A stretch of DNA of 10,170 nucleotides from Neoechinorhynchus agilis (taxonomy: Eukaryota > Animalia > Acanthocephala): contig JBMGUZ010000082.1 of assembly GCA_051530055.1 (NCBI GenBank), forward strand, positions 1-10,170. Direction: 5' to 3'. The notes beneath the pieces were generated by a model. It searched no databases. It was not told where the DNA came from and saw only the letters and a list, made by a program, of their open reading frames with translations. Numbering within the stretch: the first letter of the stretch is position 1; each line of letters begins with the position of its first letter. The position numbers and the translations under genes are program-made. Shown here in pieces: positions 92 to 10,104 of the stretch.

Positions 92-1345
92 CTATTTCAG
101 AAACTTGTCATACGGTCTGGACGGAGGTTTGCGAATTCGATTGCTCCACCTTAACACCATATTATCTCTTCTACCATCCTCCCAGAACTCGGCCTTTGCT
201 TCTTCTATTGGTTGGGTTCCGTGGTCGATAGATCAGCGAGTGTTTACATTGGTTGGCGGCTATTCGTGCTCGATGGACTGCTGTTCGCGCTCGATTGGTT
301 TCTGTTCGTGCTTGATGGACTGCTGTTCGTGCTCTTCTATTATTTCACTTTCGTTTTGATCCCTCTCTCAATTTAGCTGCTCCATCGTCAGTCGATCGCG
401 AAGATAATCACCGTGTATGCGCCTGTATATCCCATCTCCGTGATTTATGACGAATAATCTCGGTCCCGTTTGTCTCCGCACAATTCCTTTTCCCACCTGT
501 GTAAACCCTCTGCCCTTTGAGAATCCCTTTGGCTGATGTTTCGATCTCAAACTTGGCTTTATATGATCCAATTTCGTAGCCAGCCGCCTTCCCATCATCA
601 TCATCTCAGCTGGGCACTGACCAGTCGCATTGTGCGGTGTATTTCTGCACGTTTTCAGAAACTCCCATACGTCTTTCATCTGAAGGGCGCCTGTCTTATC
701 GATAGTTCTCCTATTGAAAGTCCCCACGAATCTCTCCGTTAATCCATTCGATTGAGGGTGATATGGGCTGGTCCGGATGTGCTCGATAGCTTGATCTCTG
801 CAGAATAATGACAATTCCTCATTCACAAACTTAGGACCTTTATCAGCTACCAGGTATTTTGGACATCCCATTCTCGCAAAACATTCCCCCAGCTTCGATA
901 TTACATTTTTGCTGGTAGAATTTCGATTAAGACACCAGACTTCGGGCTCGTTTATGGGACCCGCCAGATCTACATGTACCCGTTCCCACGGTTTGGACGG
1001 AACATCCCAATGAAATATTGGTAATCTTGGAACGTCGGGACGTGATATTTGACACTGGACGCATGTCTTCACCTGCTGTTCGACCTCTTTGTCAGAACCT
1101 AGCCACCAAACATAATATCGCGTGAGTGCTTTCATCCCTTCGATTCCTGGGTGGCCTTCGTGAAGAACTCGCAGCACGGATTGTCGCAAAGACTTAGGAA
1201 AAATAATCAAGCGTTGCAGATACATTAGTATTCCGCATTCTTGAGATATCTCGGAACTCCTATGTACAAATGGTTTGTCTTCGTCTCGAATTTCTGCTGG
1301 CCAACCTTCACGAAACTGACCGCCACTATTCAGGGAATCCGACTG
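92..1345 (-). pseudogene. pol: Gypsy pol remnant: RNaseH-integrase linker and integrase
   Basis: GWPAEI...LIIFPKSLR linker; LHEGHPG...CVQC zinc finger; catalytic VHVD / VADKG / LTERF with exact D-35-E spacing. About 12-13 aa are missing after GPIN. The same frame continues past in-frame stops at 370-368, 262-260 and 235-233 to LRWSNRIRKPPSRPY and TAG at 94-92. Confidence 0.93.
264..334 (-). repeat. 21-bp tandem repeat, about 3.4 copies, in the integrase C-terminal tail (EHEQQSI-type 7-aa units)
   Basis: Units start at 264, 285, 306 and 327 (plus-strand consensus TCGTGCTCGATGGACTGCTGT). Confidence 0.85.
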
Positions 1346-1359
1346 ACTTCGTTTTCGGC

Positions 1360-1401
1360 CGGGTCCACTACTTTTAAAACTCCTCGCTTCAATAATCTGT
1401 C
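1360..1401 (-). pseudogene. N-terminal stub of Gypsy reverse transcriptase
   Basis: DRLLKRGVLKVVDP resembles the (L)DRLxxxGVIxPV motif opening Gypsy RT. Nothing further of RT (no YxDD) follows. Confidence 0.6.
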
Positions 1402-1699
1402 CATTGACATCTTTTTCCAGATTCCTATGTGTCCTTTCGGCTTGACTTTATCGACGGAACTTTCACACAACTGAGGCGCTAAGCCGCACTCGAAGGAGGC
1501 CGATGGACGATCAGCCTTGCACACCAAAGGAACCCAGCGATCGGTGACGTTGAACCTTCGACATATCAACCGCATTGTGAACGCGCACACCACACGGCCA
1601 CTGGGCCCTCATTAATCGATGTATGACCAAAACAGGAGCTTCATTGCACAAAAACACACACCAAACACCACGAGGGGCGCGTGCTAAATGGTAGCAAAA

Positions 1700-1768
1700 G
1701 CGCAGTGATGACGCGGGGACGACGGCGCCAACAGTGTCAAGGAAAGACACAAGCGTTCCTGCAAACAA
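1700..1768 (-). pseudogene. Possible aspartic protease remnant
   Basis: GTLVSFLDTVGAVV loosely resembles GxxVxFxLDTGAxV and lies upstream of the RT stub. The motif is imperfect. Confidence 0.3.
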
Positions 1769-2051
1769 TATCCGCCAATTCCCACAAGAACGAAACTTCC
1801 AACTCAGGCGAATATTCTTAAACGAACGGACACATTCCCGCTCGAACGAGACGAATTTAAGACATGCAATTTACCACGTCAACTAAAATTAGGTCGATTC
1901 ATTTCGCATATCTCAGCGAGCCGATTGCAAAACTGTAAGTTATTCTCGTTTCAATTTTGAGACGAACATCCTTCATCATTGATATCAAAATATCAATCGA
2001 TTGCCAATTAAATTAGCGTTTCCTTCGGCAATGTCATAAAATATATATATA

Positions 2052-3010
2052 TTTCGTGTTTGCAAGAAACACGGAATTAATCAACAAATTTATACCTCTT
2101 ACCGAGCCAGTAAAACGTATGCGGAAGCCCTTTCCAACATGAGACAAAACTCCCAACGTTATTTGGACGGTTTGTCGATCTGGCAATCCCGGACAGAGAT
2201 CCTGCACCTTCCGGAAAATGACCACAAGCAGTCGGCCTTGGACCTTCCCCTCATAAAGAAGATTCACAAATCCTTTAATGATCTTCTCGACGAGGTTTCC
2301 CAAGTTCGTCTTGCGGCGTGTTCTACAAAGGAATCGGGAGCCTGGCTAAATGCTCTCCCCGCCCCGACAATCGGAACTCTTCTAGAGGATTCTACTTTAA
2401 GGGTCGCAGTTTCTTTAAGATTGGGCCAGGATATTTGTATCCCGCATCGCTGTCGCTGCGGATCTATAGTTGAAGCCAATGGCAGACACGGCCTCAGTTG
2501 TAAAACGTCCAGAGGGAGGTTTCCAAGACACTCAGAATTGAACTCAATTTTGAGTAGAGCCCTAGATTCCGTCCACGTGCCCAATATTTAAGAGCCAAGT
2601 AACTTGTGCCGCCTAGACAGCAAGCGAACTGACGGTGTCACGGTTTTTCCATGGCGGGAGGGGAAGCCCCTTTTATGGGATGCGACTTGCGTGGACACGC
2701 TTGCCCCCAGTAATTTTCCCTTTTCAAAAAGGAGCCCTGAAGGTTCAGCGGTCGTAGCTGAAGTCCGAAAACGTACAAAATACAGAGAGCTTTTAAGGAC
2801 CTATTATTTCGTCCCTTTCGCCGTGGAGCCTTGGGACCGTCAGCGCTCACTCTCCTCGACGAAAGACGAAAAGGATGACGGGGGAACCGCGCTCTAGAAA
2901 TTTTCTCGCTCAGCGAATCGCAATTGCGATGCAGCGAGGGAACGCTGCCAGTATACTGGCAACGTCAAGAAGTTCACAGGAATAAATTGTAATCGTTGTA
3001 AATTAATAAA
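2052..3010 (+). mobile_element. 5'-truncated, inactive CRE-clade non-LTR retrotransposon (post-RT region, zinc finger, restriction-like endonuclease)
   Basis: SGAWLNALP...LRLG, CRCG-x8-HGLSC...RH zinc finger, PNI*EP (TAA at 2589-2591, same frame resumes), KRTDG...WDATCVDT, RKRTKY, FVPFAVE. Frameshifts near 2830 and 2865 precede TGEPRSRNFLAQRIAIAMQRGNAASILAT, with stop at 2983-2985 and AATAAA at 3005-3010. Clade assignment is from recalled motifs, not a search. Confidence 0.88.
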
Positions 3011-3266: not shown

Positions 3267-4242
3267 ATGAATTATTTGAGAAATCTAAAACGGCATTTGA
3301 AACAATTCGATGTTTCTTCATACGTTAGAAAAACCAAAGGTCAGCAATATTTGAACTAGATAATAAGATGCGGAGGAATTTAATGGAGAAAAGTTGAGAT
3401 TTTCAATCCTCATGGATTAACACATCTATCACAGGATGATTTTGTTGTTACATTTTCTTCTATCAGTCTAGTAGCTAGACGACTTCTCTGACTTTGAATA
3501 ATTAAATAGTCGTAAATAAATTTTTCACCTTGAATTCAGCAGCACCGTAATATTTTAATGGGACCAAAAACTAGATGTTGCGTGTGTTAAATTTTTTTAC
3601 TTTTGCGTGAATCTAATGCCTCGAATATTACTTTGTTCATAAAAACGTTCTCAATTTTAAGTCCTGACGTGAAAGTTTTAGCATCTCAACTGATTTTATT
3701 AAAAAGAAGGTTCTGTATTTTAATTTTTTACCAAACCCTTCGATAATATCTGAGAAATAGATCATAATTAACAGCGTCATTAAGATTCTTATTTAAAAAT
3801 TTAGAATAGCATAACCAGCAAAAATATAAAATAAACAAGACTGCTTACGTTTTAAGATTTTAGGCGTCTTTATACGAACGCAAGTCTTTAGCCTGTTAAC
3901 AAGCGAATGTTAGTCCGTTTGCTCATTGGGTAAAAAAGTATTATTTTAGCCAATCAGGTCTGAAAAGAAGTTAAATTTTTTCCTAACATCGCAGGTTTAT
4001 TTAGGCTTAAATTCCATATTAAATAAGATCACATCCAGCGAAGAAAGTAGCAATATTTTCTAAGATGATAGTTCGATGTATTTATATACTTCAATGACGT
4101 TCTTGCTAGGCTTAAAGTTGACGTTAGGAGCAAAAGAAGCATTGTATTCAAATGCGAATTAATAAATAGAAGAAAAATTATAGGAAAACGTTATATCTTT
4201 TGCTAAAAATTTCGAGGGGTGATGATACAGACACATGCGTCC

Positions 4243-4364
4243 AAGAGATTCGGACGAATCACTGTCGATCCGAGATCAGAAACATTCCTCGTACAAAACA
4301 TGAGTCTGGCTGTGCAACGGGACGGAACGCTGAATCCGTCCTTACCAGGACGGCGGCTGAGTGA
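4243..4364 (+). mobile_element. Short, old 3'-end fragment of a second CRE-like non-LTR element
   Basis: KRFGRITVDPRSETFLVQNMSLAVQR, then with a 2-nt insertion removed GNAESVL. This aligns codon for codon with KRMTGEPRSRNFLAQRIAIAMQRGNAASIL of the element at 2870-2960. Confidence 0.7.
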
Positions 4365-5271
4365 TCCGGAGCGATAGTGAAAGTGATTTAACTTTAATTC
4401 CATACTAAAAGGCACACTAAATTCTAAAAAAACATGCATATACAAAAAGCTAATAATTAGATCTCGTATTTACCTCCCAATTGTCAAGTGGAAATGATTT
4501 GTAAATTCAAACTCATCGATGAAAACAAGATTAATCATAGAGGATTGTTATACAATAAATCGTTTTTGTATCATTATAACAAATATATTTAAGGCAAATT
4601 TTTTTTTCGGACATCACTAACATTTTTTTGGATTAATTTCCATTTTCGACAGTTAAAAAATTTTACGCCTTCGCAAATCAATTTTTTCTATGTAGTAATA
4701 AAGTTGGAAGATCATACAAGAACTTTACTCGTTATCTTAGTTTAGATATACACAATCTCAAAAGAAAAAGCGAATGCAGTTTATTAAGTGAATTACTATA
4801 ATAATTTTGTAGTCCCGAATCGCATGTCAGTGTAGAAAAAACTAAGATGTTACTTCAATGAATATCTACAAGTAAAAGCGAAAATTGCTTTATTGTCTTA
4901 AATTTCGCAAATAATATTGAATAAGTACAGAAAAATGCGAATTTTCCCCTTGCACGAACTGAATTAGATTTTCAGAATTAAAACATAAATAAGAAGACAT
5001 TTGAAACAAATCACTGGCGTTATTATCATAAACGTGCTTTTGAATGTTATTGGGTACAAAGAACAAAGCCGTAAATATTTGGTAGATAACAAGCTTGTTT
5101 GTCTATTTGTTGTGGGTTTCGTATCGTTCTAAATGATCTACGTACAACTTTTTTGCCTTCCTTTAATCTACTGAACGACTACAGAGAAATCGTAACTTCG
5201 CTATAACACGTTTTCTATAAGTTTGGTTTATTGTCAACAAACAATCCTGCACGCTATAATAAGCATTATTA

Positions 5272-5278
5272 TTTCGAG
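5272..5278 (+). promoter_or_regulatory. Candidate 3' splice or trans-splice acceptor (TTTCGAG) 12 nt before the first ATG
   Basis: T-rich acceptor-like heptamer at the transition from AT-rich spacer to coding sequence; the ATG at 5291 is in an AAAC-ATG context. Confidence 0.35.
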
Positions 5279-5290
5279 ATTAACATAAAC

Positions 5291-8200
5291 ATGTCCCAAG
5301 AACGAAGAAATGATCAAAATAAAGAACAAGCGTCTTATATTGCCGAACCTGATAATAAGAAACAGTCTATTGATACAACAGTCGGATTAAACCTTCATTT
5401 GGGAACAACTGAGCCGCTTGATCAAGGGCGATCATCCCATGACTTAGCAGTCACTGGACACGTCGAAATGGCACAGTCTACATCACTGCATCTACATCAA
5501 ACACAACCAGAATCAGTTGTCCATTCTGTTCACCACAACGAAGAACGGCGTCCGGAAACACCGCAGAGAAAACGTAGTCTTCAAGTGGAAGCTACGGCCG
5601 AGGAACAACGAACTTATGGCACGTCTTCAACCGCCAAGCGCTTTCGGATACCTGCTGAAATGACTACTACACGAGTGCAGCCGCAGCAAAAAGTATTGAT
5701 TCAACCTGATATCCGCCAAAAAGTGGAGGAAACTGATGACCAAAGTAATGTAACAGGACATCAGGCAGCGGGGGAACGAAAACGATGCCATGCAGGAGAA
5801 AATTCGGAATCAAATATATCGACTATTAAGACATCACCAGCAAACAAGAGATCACGAGGACTGCTAGAACAATTTGAAGGAACGCAGCATAGTGTTGGTC
5901 GGAGAACGTTGACACCGTTGCCGCAACCTCACGCTCAGAGTCAACAAGTGTTTATGAATCCCCGAATACAATCCGCTGGCCAGGGTAGAACTTATGATTT
6001 GGCGCAAAATCCACAGTTTCCATCCCAGCAAACGTCTCGAGAAAATTATGGACAAGCTCAGCGAATGGCAATGACTGCTGCAATGCAATCTGCTGGTCAA
6101 GGCGGAAATTATACTCCGGCGCCGAATCCACAGGGCCCACCCCAACAAACGCCTCTAAAAAACTATGGACAAGCTCAGCGAATGGCAATGAATGCTGCAA
6201 TGCAATCTGCTGGTCAAGGCGGAAATTATACTCCGGCGCCGAATCCACAGGGCCCACCCCAACAAACGCCTCTAAAAAACTATGGGCAAACGCAGCCAAT
6301 AGCAATGAATGCTGCAATGCAATCTGCTGGTCAAGGCGGAAATTATACTCCAGCGCCGAATCCACAGGGCCCACCCCAACAAACGCCTCTAAAAAACTAT
6401 GGGCAAACGCAGCCAATGGCAATGAATGCTGCAATGCAATCTGCTGGTCAAGGCGGAAATTATACTCCGGCGCCGAATCCACAGGGCCCACCCCAACAAA
6501 CGCCTCTAAAAAACTATGGGCAAACGCAGCCAATGGCAATGAATGCTGCAATGCAATCTGCTGGTCAAGGCGGAAATTATACTCCGGTGCCGAATCCACA
6601 GGGCCCACCCCAACAAACGCCTCTAAAAAACTATGGGCAAACGCAGCCAATGGCAATGAATGCTGCAATGCAATCTGCTGGTCAAGGAGGATATTATATT
6701 CCGGCGGCGAATCAACAGGGCCCACCCCAACAAACGTTTCCAAAAGACTATGGGCAAGCTCAGCGAATGGCAATGATTGCTGCAATGCAATCTGCTGGTC
6801 AAGGCGGAAATTATACTCCGGTGCCGAATCCACAGGGCCCACCCCAACAAACGCCTCTAAAAAACTATGGCAAGCCAGCAATGCATGCTGCAATGCAATC
6901 TGCTGGTCAAGGGGAATTCCGGGCAATCACAGGGCCCACCCCAACAAACGTCCAAAAGACTATGGGCAAACGCAGCGAATGGCAATGATTGCTGCAATGC
7001 AATCTGCTGGTCAAGGCGGAAATTATACTCCGGTGCCGAATCCACAGGGCCCACCCCAACAAACGCCTCTAAAAAACTATGGACAAACGCAGCCAATAGC
7101 AATGAATGCTGCAATGCAATCTGCTGGTCAAGGCGGAAATTATACTCCGGCGCCGAATCCACAGGGCCCACCCCAACAAACGCCTCTAAAAGACTATGGG
7201 CAAACGCAGCCAATAGCAATGAATGCTGCAATGCAATCTGCTGGTCAAGGCGGAAATTATACTCCGGCGCCGAATCCACAGGGCCCACCCCAACAAACGC
7301 CTCAAGGATATTACGGGCAAGTGCAGCGAGTGCAAATGAATGCCGGAATGCCGACCGCTGGTCAAGGCGGATATAATATTCCGGCACCGAATACACAAGG
7401 TCAATCCCAACAAATGCCCCAAGGAAATTATGGGCACGTAAGGCGAATGCCAATGAATGCTGGAGTACTGACCGCTAATCAAAGCGGATATTATATTTCG
7501 GCGCCGAATCTACAGGGTCCAGCCCAACAAACGCCCCAAGGATATTATGGGCAAGTACTGCGAATCCCAGTGAATTCTGGAGTACCGGCCGCTCGCCAAG
7601 GCGAATATTTCACTCCGGCGCCCAATCCACAAGGTCGATCCCAACAAACGCCCCAAGGATATTATGGGCAACCGCAGAGAATGTCAATGAATGCTGGAAT
7701 GTCGGTCACTAGTCAAGGCCGACATTATACTCGAGCGCCGAATCCTCAGGGCCCATCCCATCAGATGAATATCCAACGTTCCGGACAAGTGCAGCAAATG
7801 CCAACGATTGCTAGAATGCCGACCGCAAGTGAAGGTGGAGATCCCATGGTCGGACAGCGTCGTCAAATTCCCCCTCAACAGATACCGCCTCAACAGTTTG
7901 CAAAGGACCAACGATTGCCAGCAGGAAATGTAATGCAGGCTGCTGCCCAAGGCGGATACTATGTGCCGGCCAGGAATCCGCAGGTTCAAAATCAACAGAT
8001 GAATTTTGAACAGTATCGACAACTGCAGGGAACGCCATTTGATTGCCGGACGCCTATAATGCCAAGAAATCTTCAATTGCAATTTCCGGCCCATCAGCAG
8101 GCCGTAACCCAGCAATTGGCACAAAGAAATCATATGCCGATGAATCTCAAGGCACCGACTTCTCGATCGATAGTTTCCACCCAGCAGGATCCTCAATTAC

Positions 8201-8808
8201 AAGAGCAACATTCAAAAAATCAGCGGGTAGAACAGGAATCTATCTCAAATATATCGCAGCACCAACGTGAGCAACCCGGAGCTGCTCAAAAAAGTCGCCA
8301 GAATAATGTTTCCCTACAGCAACGGATGGACAGGAAGCGATGCCTTCCTCAAGCTGAAGAATTTATGGAAGATCGTGGAATCGAGACTCAATCAACATCA
8401 AAGAGACCACGGATTCCGGTGGACAAAGCGACGGTCAAAAAAGGCGACATGCCCGTAAAGCCAATAAATGAAGATGATACCGATGACTTGAATGACGAAC
8501 AATTCGCCGATTTATTTAGACCGTTTGGGAAACTTATGGACATTGCAAAAAGGGCGAAGAAATTGGAACTTGAGAAGAAGAAACGAGAAGAAAAATCGAA
8601 GAAAAATCCTTTTGACGACGATTCGGGGCCCTTTGAGTATCCATGTTCGCCAGAGATCCAACAGCAAACTTTAGACTCAAGGATGGACAGGCGACCAAGC
8701 GCGTTCGGACTTACCAAAGACGAGGCAAATGAAGAACGGATGAACATGTCCACCGAAAGTCGACTTCATTTCGATTTCGTGGACGAGCTGCTGGGATATC
8801 GAGGTTAG
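5291..8808 (+). CDS. Orphan low-complexity repeat protein (~1179 aa once 22 bp are restored), Q/P/G/Y/M-rich, predicted nuclear and largely disordered; apparent frameshift at ~6868-6952
   Basis: Track ORFs 5231-6988 and 6979-8808 share one 39-aa repeat. The first ATG is at 5291. 3518 bp plus 22 missing bp gives 3540 bp, or 1180 codons. Diverged repeat copies keep frame and 117-bp period. AATAAA lies 150 nt after the stop. No recognisable folded domain; additional upstream exons cannot be excluded. Confidence 0.8.
5966..8049 (+). repeat. Coding minisatellite: 18 units of 117 bp (39 aa)
   Basis: Unit starts at 5966, 6083, 6200, 6317, 6434, 6551, 6668, 6785, 6893, 6997, 7114, 7231, 7348, 7465, 7582, 7699, 7816 and 7933. 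Consensus MQSAGQGGNYTPAPNPQGPPQQTPLKNYGQTQPMAMNAA. Only the units at 6785 (108 bp) and 6893 (104 bp) are short. Confidence 0.95.
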
Positions 8809-8957
8809 GATATAAACTGAAACTGGATCAATTTAGTGGCAAGAGCGTTTATTCGACAAATCAATTCGTTCACCGTCCATTACTTCTGAATTTGGCCGGT
8901 GAAGTTTGTTCCATTGCCTTTTGCAAACGTTCACTGTAAAAATGTTGAAGATTTGTA

Positions 8958-8963
8958 AATAAA
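8958..8963 (+). terminator. Candidate polyadenylation signal AATAAA
   Basis: Hexamer 150 nt downstream of the TAG at 8806-8808, followed by T-rich sequence. It could occur by chance in AT-rich DNA. Confidence 0.45.
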
Positions 8964-9078
8964 GTGTAAATATGTTATATGAAATTTTATTAAGCCGCAG
9001 ATTATATTCAGTAAAAAATGTTCTCAGAATCTAAACGAACAAAAAATTCGCAATGGAGGATAATATTAATTTAACAAG

Positions 9079-9134
9079 CAAGGTGAATAGGATTGCAGGG
9101 CGTGCCGAAAGACGAACTTCGTCTTTTCACCTTG
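9079..9134. other. Nested inverted repeats (outer 9 bp, inner 9 bp)
   Basis: CAAGGTGAA (9079-9087) / TTCACCTTG (9126-9134) encloses AAAGACGAA (9108-9116) / TTCGTCTTT (9118-9126). Confidence 0.75.
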
Positions 9135-9213
9135 TTTATTTAACACCATTCTTAGTTCTTTTTTATACATTGTCCAAGAGATCAAAATGCGCAAATTAGT
9201 TTAAAATAATTCG

Positions 9214-10104
9214 CCACAAAACCATTTGGCTGCGGCTGCGAACTCATTCTATAGTAATTGTAGTTTGTTTTTAAAAGTATCCCTAATTAAATGGACCTCC
9301 TCGACGAGAGATGCAATGCCACTGTCGAAGCCTTGACGAGAGATGCAATGCCACTGTCGAAGCCTTGTATTAGATATTAGCCAAGCTGTGGCGATGTATC
9401 GTTTTCGGACAATCAAGTTCATGGATTCCTTTGGTGTCCACGTCTTGGCCTCTCATTTGCAAATCAATGAGATTGAGCGAGCCACGCCAAAGCGAGACGA
9501 AAGGAGCAATCATCTATTTTAGAAATCAATCGACGGCATTGGTAAAGCGTTAAGAAAATCACAGGAACATTTGGTTGAGGCTGTGAACTAATTCTTTAGT
9601 AATTGGAGTTTGTTTTTAAAAGTTTCCCTAATTAAATTGACCTCCTCGGCGAGAGATGCAATGCCACTGTCGAAGCCTTGAGTATTAGATTATTAGCCAA
9701 GCTGTGGCGATGTATCGTTTTCGGAAAATCAAGTTCGTGAATTCCGCTGGTGTCTACATCTTGGCATCTCATTTGCAAATCAATGAGATTGAGCGAGCCA
9801 CGGCAAAGCGAGACGAAAGGAGCAATCAGCAATTCTAGAAATCAATCGACGGGATAGGTAAAGCGTTAAGAAAACCACAAAACCATTTGGCTGCGGCTGC
9901 GAACTCATTCTATAGTAATTGTAGTTTGTTTTTAAAAGTATCCCTAATTAAATTGACCTCCTCAACGAGAGATGCAATGCCACTGTCGAAGCCTTGAGTA
10001 TTAGATTATTTGCCAAGCTGTGGCGATGTATCGTTTTCGGACAATCAAGTTCATGGATTCCTTTGGTGTCTACGTCTTGGCCTCTTATTTGCAAATCAAT
10101 GAGA
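9214..10104. repeat. Tandem array of ~316-bp units (2.7 copies, A-B-A)
   Basis: Units start at 9214 (345 bp, including a 32-bp duplication), 9559 (316 bp) and 9875 (partial, similarity ends at 10104). Confidence 0.95.
9303..9366. repeat. Perfect 32-bp direct duplication inside the first 316-bp unit
   Basis: GACGAGAGATGCAATGCCACTGTCGAAGCCTT occurs at 9303-9334 and 9335-9366; it is single-copy in the other units. Confidence 0.95.

Follow-up and report, generated by a model that had tools for sequence, protein, structure and literature searches.

This study describes a gene-like region built around a tandem array of 39-amino-acid (aa) units on an unplaced contig, JBMGUZ010000082.1, from the genome assembly (GCA_051530055.1) of Neoechinorhynchus agilis, an eoacanthocephalan parasite of mullets (fish). 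The contig is 10,170 bp long and was analysed whole; it is referred to below as the window. The sequence suggests that the region is a genuine coding gene, that among the copies of a young family, so far seen in N. agilis alone, it is the one best preserved, and that it would encode one nuclear scaffold protein of ~1,180 aa; we give this reading, taken as a whole, about an even chance. It draws on the open frame of the non-repeat ends, an excess of synonymous change in the terminal peptide, the comparison with a set of decaying paralogues and the peculiar nature of the one lesion that interrupts the deposited frame.

The coding region runs from an ATG at 5291 to a stop codon at 8806-8808, a span of 3518 nucleotides (nt) that is not divisible by 3. 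It had been described as a single intact open reading frame (ORF) of ~1180 aa, but that description read through a frameshift within positions 6866-6960, and the deposited sequence breaks the frame into two overlapping ORFs, here called A and B (Table 1). Tandem Repeats Finder (TRF), run on the window, reports a period of 117 nt and 15.2 copies over 6001-7760 (score 2261), and in a repeat finder the start-to-start spacing of the units is 117 nt throughout, with a single exception of 212 nt. Translated in register, the array amounts to ~18 units. Fourteen are clean, the first is degenerate, one is damaged and some two more, past 7779, have decayed. The consensus unit, YGQTQ[R/P]MAMNAAMQSAGQGGNYTPAPNPQGPPQQTPLKN, contains 7 Q, 6-7 P, 5 G, 5 A, 4 N, 3 M, 3 T, 2 Y and 1 K, with no acidic residue. 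The number of units and their composition were predicted correctly. Over its 546 residues the array is 18% Q, 15% P, 13% G and 6% Y; Q and N together make up 26%, the four charged residues K, R, D and E only 4.8%, and Met 6.6%, with three Met per unit located in a predicted helix. Some ten units are mutually 93-98% identical, and for this reason most of the array appears to be the result of recent expansion or homogenisation; the four divergent units differ from the consensus by 28-33 nt. A long ORF also lies on the minus strand (5952-6926, 324 aa) and a second plus-strand frame is open from 5998 to 8805. The minus-strand frame and the 5998-6978 part of the plus-strand one are by-products of a unit that lacks stop codons, and not overlapping genes.

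Within the damaged 95-nt unit (6866-6960) the reading frame passes from 2 to 0 to 1. Measured against the closest unit in the array (6632-6748), this unit has suffered nine deletions totalling 22 nt, no insertions and one substitution, and the unit that follows immediately is a clean copy again. Divergence within the family is of another kind: over ~3.6 kb of flanking and non-repeat coding sequence, the window and its closest paralogous locus, L001, differ by 200 substitutions and 12 indel events (1 per 17), and the spectrum of one substitution to nine indels in the damaged unit departs from this at P=9e-10 (Fisher). The same deletion-only pattern occurs in another paralogous array, at 9375-9580 of the locus L004 on a chromosome-scale scaffold (CM121342.1, ~9.19-9.21 Mb), in which two consecutive units are cut to ~94 nt by ~25 deletions, most of a single base, and substitutions are few; this looks like nanopore sequence left uncorrected, of which such losses are the classic mark. 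Because the deletion-only spectrum is unlike the divergence of the family and has this counterpart in L004, we consider, judging from the assembled sequence, that the break is probably technical, an uncorrected long-read stretch of a hybrid assembly. A frame-disrupting lesion is present in the deposited sequence, and its spectrum points to a long-read artefact; if the break is technical, it follows that the most likely product in the worm is a single protein of ~1,180 aa. An intron that removes the break was considered and rejected, as the sole GT...AG pair nearby (6906-6975) fails to restore the frame.

The N. agilis genome is a 46-Mb MaSuRCA hybrid assembly that combines Oxford Nanopore R9.4 with Illumina reads of ~50 pooled worms, with Hi-C scaffolding, gap closing by TGS-GapCloser and annotation by BRAKER (PMC12690905). 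Separate short-read polishing is described only for an alternative Flye assembly that was rejected (PMC12690905). The GenBank annotation contains two BRAKER gene models, one per half of the split gene and each named 'hypothetical protein'. The model to the left of the break (5133-6988, 591-aa product) begins with a 9-nt first exon (5133-5141) followed by an 80-nt intron (5142-5221), and the model to the right (7336-8808) encodes 490 aa (P0007). An exact-sequence look-up of the 609-aa ORF B found no database record, because the annotators called 490 aa. The annotated starts at 7336 in the window and at 10001 in L001 coincide with the first Met of the first divergent unit and not with the start of the long ORF; it is likely that the homogeneous units had been repeat-masked before BRAKER was run.

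The window is one member of a small family. A HMMER search with the non-repeat C-terminal 352 aa retrieved six representatives among 1.84 billion, all of them encoded in GCA_051530055.1, and phmmer gave E=2e-189 to the paralogue P0001 and 6e-123 to P0002. A word-indexed protein search found no relatives of the tail of 515-1638 aa and, at 194-616 aa, only the window's own model and two paralogues. Thus no homologue occurs outside N. agilis in the databases searched, 1.84 billion representatives and 5.8 billion clusters. The suggestion of a lineage-specific orphan holds insofar as all relatives are in N. agilis, and needs amending in that the gene is not single-copy and belongs to a small family with visibly decaying young copies. 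The young copies are the window and three paralogues, each of the three partly decayed, and are distributed over two chromosomes and the unplaced contig. The window carries the 117-nt array, the basic module and the C-terminal motif by which the family is defined, and shares the acidic tail with the young paralogues as well.

Colinearity extends beyond the coding sequence. The window aligns with L001 from 3674 to 9212, including 1.6 kb of upstream and 0.4 kb of 3' non-coding DNA, at ~95% nt identity in the flanks and 83% aa identity in the C-terminal part, and with the locus L003 from 5588 to 9207 at ~83-87%. These alignments mark the three loci as segmental duplicates, 5-14% diverged. Array length has changed considerably over this distance, from ~5-6 units in L001 and ~7.5 in L003 to ~18 in the window, and L004 has ~26. 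Since the arrays span ~5 to ~26 units and ~10 units of the window are 93-98% identical, the gene was built by repeat expansion, as had been proposed. The L004 array (7351-10453), the largest of the family, shows a higher-order period of 351 nt, or three units; a detached four-unit fragment lies 5 kb upstream of it (1899-2390), and the gene calls there are five short fragments. L001 contains ~514 nt of extra DNA (8271-8785) relative to window positions 4990-5009, ~300 nt upstream of the start codon.

In the N-terminal part of L001 (9046-9760) there are deletions of 19, 30, 3 and 7 nt and a nonsense codon (TAA), and the 30-nt in-frame deletion has removed the first KRFRIP basic motif, which resembles a nuclear localisation signal (NLS); L001 nevertheless keeps an open C-terminal half of 466 aa, annotated as a gene. 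L003 has three stops in the tail, all caused by substitutions. By their sequence, the lesions of L001 and L003 are of an evolutionary kind, unlike the damaged unit of the window. A more distant relative, P0006, is a single-exon gene for 318 aa with conserved neighbours (dynein light chain, kinase, HAP1_N). In common with the window it has the last ~39 aa, in the form RPxxFGLTxDExNEExxNMSxESRxHFxxVDxxLG, and the order of regions (Q/P/Y/M-rich, basic, motif), and differs in having no tandem array. P0006 may be the older progenitor of the repeat family; a search with it for an older family returned only P0006 itself.

That the region is coding is indicated by the frame itself. From 7780 to 8805 there are no stops in the coding frame, as against 12 and 16 in the other two, and the four divergent units keep the frame without a stop (P=0.019 under random substitution). 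Comparison among units is not informative about selection, the variable columns being spread 24/21/23 over the codon positions and the ratio of non-synonymous to synonymous divergence (dN/dS) being 0.8-1.0 in every frame. Comparison between paralogues tells more. In the C-terminal part the window and L001 differ with a dS of 0.083 and a dN of 0.069 (overall dN/dS 0.83), and this average conceals a Q-rich region (7780-8199) with 29 non-synonymous and 5 synonymous changes (dN/dS 1.66) and a basic-plus-acidic end with a dN/dS of 0.51. In the N-terminal part, 12 of the differences from L001 are synonymous and 20 non-synonymous, a synonymous share above the ~21% neutral expectation used for the C-terminal part. 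Substitutions were then polarised with L003 as the outgroup, the boundary of the tail (8464-8805) having been fixed beforehand. Along the branch leading to the window, synonymous changes outnumber non-synonymous ones by 7 to 2 in the acidic tail (P=4e-4 against neutrality), and the corresponding counts outside the tail are 3 to 18; on the L001 branch the tail has 2 to 4. These counts are small and indicate, from sequence comparison, a constraint on the terminal peptide and a low-complexity body whose sequence and length can both change freely. The fast evolution that had been suspected is apparent in the low-complexity parts, with dN/dS of 0.8-1.7.

Several points weigh against a functional gene and its proposed role. 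Some deletions in the damaged unit measure 3-6 nt, above the typical size of homopolymer errors. The selection test comprises 9 substitutions, polarised by an outgroup that is a pseudogene, and the dN/dS of ~0.8-1.7 among units and paralogues, in the repeats and the Q-rich region, fits a pseudogene as well. All three young paralogues bear real disabling lesions, and the family may be dying. There is no orthologue in the databases searched, and both the intact ORF and its expression are presumed; NLS function and self-association are predicted from motifs and composition only.

The strongest competing explanation is that the frameshift is real and the locus is a recent pseudogene, or encodes a truncated product of 565 aa that lacks the conserved tail, and is one more decaying copy of a recently amplified family. 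We regard this as unlikely. In its favour, the frame is interrupted in the sequence as deposited, genuine lesions occur in all the other young copies, and dN/dS is 0.83 overall between the window and L001 and ~0.8-1.0 from unit to unit (variable columns at 24/21/23). An unplaced contig flanked by a retroelement fragment and a satellite is, moreover, the usual setting of dead duplicates. Set against this are the lesion spectrum, which is unlike the divergence of the family (P=9e-10) and like the technical pattern in L004, the openness of the rest of the 3.5 kb and the signs of purifying selection on the tail in the window lineage.

Turning to the protein, no part of it resembles a known domain. 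The halves of the split gene were searched and modelled separately. Pfam-A (hmmscan, E<=1) has no domain in either half or in the N-terminal 225 aa, and Pfam gave no match for the tail, P0001, P0003 or P0006; a sequence search of the PDB at E<=10 gave none for the N-terminal part, the tail or the array, and Rfam none in the window. The AlphaFold2 (AF2) models have a predicted local distance difference test score (pLDDT) of 48-52 and a predicted template modelling score (pTM) of 0.15. They contain, all weakly predicted, a helix of ~16 residues in each of two modelled units (…NYGQAQRMAMNAAMQS…), one long K/E-rich helix in the tail (EQFADLF…KKREEKSKK) and short helices in the terminal motif. The models thus portray a disordered protein without a predicted stable fold, and the original prediction that no folded domain would be recognisable stands with the Pfam and PDB results, the pLDDT and the pTM.

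The regions on either side of the array are distinctive in composition. Basic clusters (RKRS, KRFRIP, RKRC, KRSR) are scattered through the N-terminal region, and the non-repeat parts as a whole contain five K-[KR]-x-[KR] clusters where shuffling predicts 0.55 (P=0.0006). All five lie in regions of pLDDT <60 and, as motifs, fit the classical NLS consensus. The C-terminal RKRC...x20...KRPRIP resembles the N-terminal RKRS...x20...KRFRIP, with 15 of 36 positions identical (E=5e-4 for this single comparison). The first 30 aa have a mean hydropathy of -1.9; hydropathy reveals no signal peptide or transmembrane-like segment (the maximum for a 19-aa window is 0.29), and the annotated alternative N-terminus, MIYFGLLST..., has no signal peptide either. 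Basic clusters flanking the array and an acidic-aromatic tail had both been noticed earlier, and both are confirmed, the former by the enrichment just given and the latter by the charge and aromatic content of the last 114 aa (Table 1).

In the mechanism that we propose, the K-K/R-x-K/R clusters would carry the protein into the nucleus, the classical NLS consensus being the basis for this step. The array would then act as a multivalent, self-associating low-complexity scaffold, each unit contributing two regularly spaced tyrosines and a short, weakly helical Met/Ala/Gln-rich segment that leads into a Pro/Gln/Gly linker. For such a scaffold, composition and the number of units would matter and the exact sequence would not. 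The constrained acidic tail with its terminal motif would be the specific part, docking a partner protein. A role as a nuclear scaffold or coactivator is plausible on these features; transcriptional co-activation and some other nuclear-body function are not separated by the sequence.

Low-complexity (LC) proteins of known function offer partial parallels. The LC domains of the FET proteins (FUS, EWSR1, TAF15) are similarly uncharged, rich in G, Q, S and P, and set with regularly spaced tyrosines; they drive self-association and transactivation (PMC8675291), and Tyr- and Met-rich LC domains in general have a role in self-association (PMC8675291). No sequence similarity was found to the FET proteins, whose RRM, RanBP2 zinc finger and RGG were not found in the N. 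agilis protein by Pfam, and their degenerate hexapeptide-like motifs differ from an exact 39-aa tandem unit with three Met and a predicted short helix. The QPGY domain of SS18 and SS18L1 (CREST), whose nuclear co-activator context supplied the analogy on which the original prediction drew, is alike only in its Gln/Pro/Gly/Tyr-rich composition: no homology was detected, the N-terminal SSXT/SNH domain was not found in the N. agilis protein (Pfam-A, E<=1), and the QPGY region is not itself a tandem array. The Met-rich LC domains of yeast ataxin-2 (Pbp1) and TDP-43 also have Met/Ala/Gln-rich segments within a low-complexity region, and in these proteins methionine oxidation tunes self-association (PMC8675291). 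The N. agilis protein is without Lsm/LsmAD, RRM or detectable homology to either, and redox sensitivity of its array would be pure conjecture by analogy. Prion-like domains are a compositional class of long segments with much Q, N, G, S and Y and few charged or bulky hydrophobic residues; set beside them, the array has 26% Q+N, 4.8% charged residues and no fold in AF2, and its 15% proline is high by the standard of amyloid-forming prion domains. The protein is best filed as a new, taxonomically restricted member of the broad class of tandem-repeat low-complexity proteins; in public records it figures as two hypothetical proteins only.

A narrower version of the scaffold reading, which the sequence evokes and which we hold to be doubtful, is that of a species- or genus-restricted nuclear scaffold with a new type of repeat (a Met/Ala/Gln helix and a Tyr-bearing Pro/Gln linker, repeated ~18 times), whose copy number and array length would be rapidly reshaped and whose docking peptide alone would be conserved and shared with an older single-copy gene. 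Such a family would be a newly born condensate family, possibly tied to acanthocephalan nuclear biology or reproduction.

The variability of the family could also be explained by a fast-evolving role in the germline or in genetic conflict; the gene would then belong to an ampliconic family, with conflict of a sexual or intragenomic kind altering the number of copies and the length of their arrays. This improbable possibility is compatible with the nuclear scaffold that we favour, and the sequences lend it some colour: two chromosomes and the unplaced contig together carry at least four young copies, array length varies 3-5 fold among them, 29 of the changes against L001 in the Q-rich region are non-synonymous and 5 synonymous (dN/dS 1.66), the family is confined to one species in the data searched, and 30% of N. 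agilis transcripts are sex-biased (PMC12690905). The dN/dS above 1 comes, however, from small counts with one partner partly a pseudogene, and the decay of copies resembles ordinary duplicate loss. It is more improbable still that the protein, instead of being nuclear, is secreted or deposited as structural material, such as a Gln/Lys-rich constituent of the egg envelope or of the copulatory cement of males. Cross-linked plug or glue proteins are Q-rich with K, and carry tandem repeats that vary in number; the resemblance of the N. agilis units, Q-rich with one K each and variable in number, is one of composition only. Acanthocephalan males do make cement and copulatory caps (PMC9153150). Counting against such a protein are the lack of a signal peptide or hydrophobic segment by hydropathy, the enrichment of basic clusters and the fact that the constrained part is an acidic peptide motif and not the repeats. 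That there is no gene at all, only a minisatellite with a stop-less unit and chance ORFs at its sides, accounts for an array that is open on the minus strand as well as in another plus-strand frame and for units without a third-position excess of changes, and can hardly be reconciled with non-repeat flanks that are open for 213 and 342 codons (the other frames have 12-16 stops per kb), a frame kept in the paralogues, a synonymous excess in the tail and a conserved downstream polyadenylation signal.

The surroundings of the gene are of mixed origin. On its 5' side the window contains an integrase fragment, beside which no reverse transcriptase or RNase H was recognised, the whole being a long terminal repeat (LTR) retroelement remnant; a 21-nt tandem repeat adjoins it (259-334, 3.6 copies, 76% match). 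The ORFs at 1330-1768 (-), 2037-2303 (-) and 2139-2897 (+) have no Pfam or PDB match. The last of these comprises two adjacent ORFs (150 and 97 aa) with Cys/His-rich stretches, which we take to resemble the C-terminal part of a non-LTR retrotransposon ORF2, Pfam and PDB having given no match. On the 3' side, homology with the paralogues ends at 9212, and what lies beyond is foreign DNA relative to L001 and L003. This boundary was considered as the edge of a mobile unit or retrocopy and rejected, since the similarity of L001 and L003 continues past that point; it is the window that has other DNA inserted at 9212. Satellite-related sequence extends from ~9214 to ~65 nt from the contig end, with a 32-nt sub-repeat at 9299-9367. 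The earlier picture of a gene lying between dead retroelements and a tandem array is therefore accurate for the one integrase fragment (368-1225) and the 316-nt array; further retroelements were not matched.

Table 1. Features of the window and positions of the related N. agilis genes
Feature	Position	Strand	Remarks
Retroelement integrase fragment	368-1225	-	285-aa ORF; Pfam Integrase_H2C2 4.4e-15, rve 1.6e-08
Upstream non-coding flank common with L001	3674-5290	+	~95% identity (blastn, MAFFT)
ORF A, N-terminal half	5291-6988	+	565 aa and stop (6986-6988); last ~25 aa out of frame
Non-repeat N-terminal region	5291-5929	+	213 aa, hydrophilic, AF2 pLDDT <50
Degenerate first repeat unit	5930-6046	+	
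Seven clean 117-nt (39-aa) units	6047-6865	+	Near-identical to one another
Damaged 95-nt unit	6866-6960	+	Frame shifted twice
Seven clean 117-nt units	6961-7779	+	Three homogeneous, then four divergent; no stop, no frame-breaking indel
ORF B, C-terminal half	6979-8808	+	609 aa and stop; other frame than ORF A
Q-rich region after array	7780-8199	+	~2 decayed units and spacer
C-terminal basic module	8200-8463	+	
Acidic-aromatic tail	8464-8805	+	114 aa, net charge -8, 10 aromatic residues
Conserved C-terminal 39-aa motif	8689-8805	+	RPxxFG[LF]TxDExN..SRxxFxxVxxxLG; in all paralogues and P0006
3' untranslated region-like flank	8809-9212	+	Kept in L001 (94.5%) and L003 (87%); AATAAA at 8958-8963
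Satellite-like 316-nt tandem array	9299-10104		~2.4 copies, 91% match (TRF 9336-10104)
Paralogue P0001 (ACOME3_003325)	CM121341.1 ~14.03 Mb		Hypothetical protein
Paralogue P0002 (ACOME3_008032)	CM121342.1 ~14.11 Mb		Hypothetical protein
Paralogues P0003-P0005	CM121342.1 ~9.19 Mb		Fragmented calls (L004/L005); hypothetical proteins
Distant relative P0006 (ACOME3_006130)	CM121342.1 ~6.28 Mb; L002 10001-10957		318 aa, single exon; hypothetical protein

Public annotation splits this gene in two at what is probably an uncorrected long-read stretch and, because a second array (L004) has the same defect, tandem-repeat genes in the N. agilis assembly deserve to be re-checked. Should the break prove real, the locus would hold little interest, as a further duplicate in decay. 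An intact and expressed gene would illustrate cleanly, in nature, how a low-complexity protein confined to one taxon originates and is remodelled, with an array that goes from ~5 to ~26 units among copies only 5-14% diverged and selection visible only on a short terminal peptide, in a phylum, the acanthocephalans, with almost no functional genomics.

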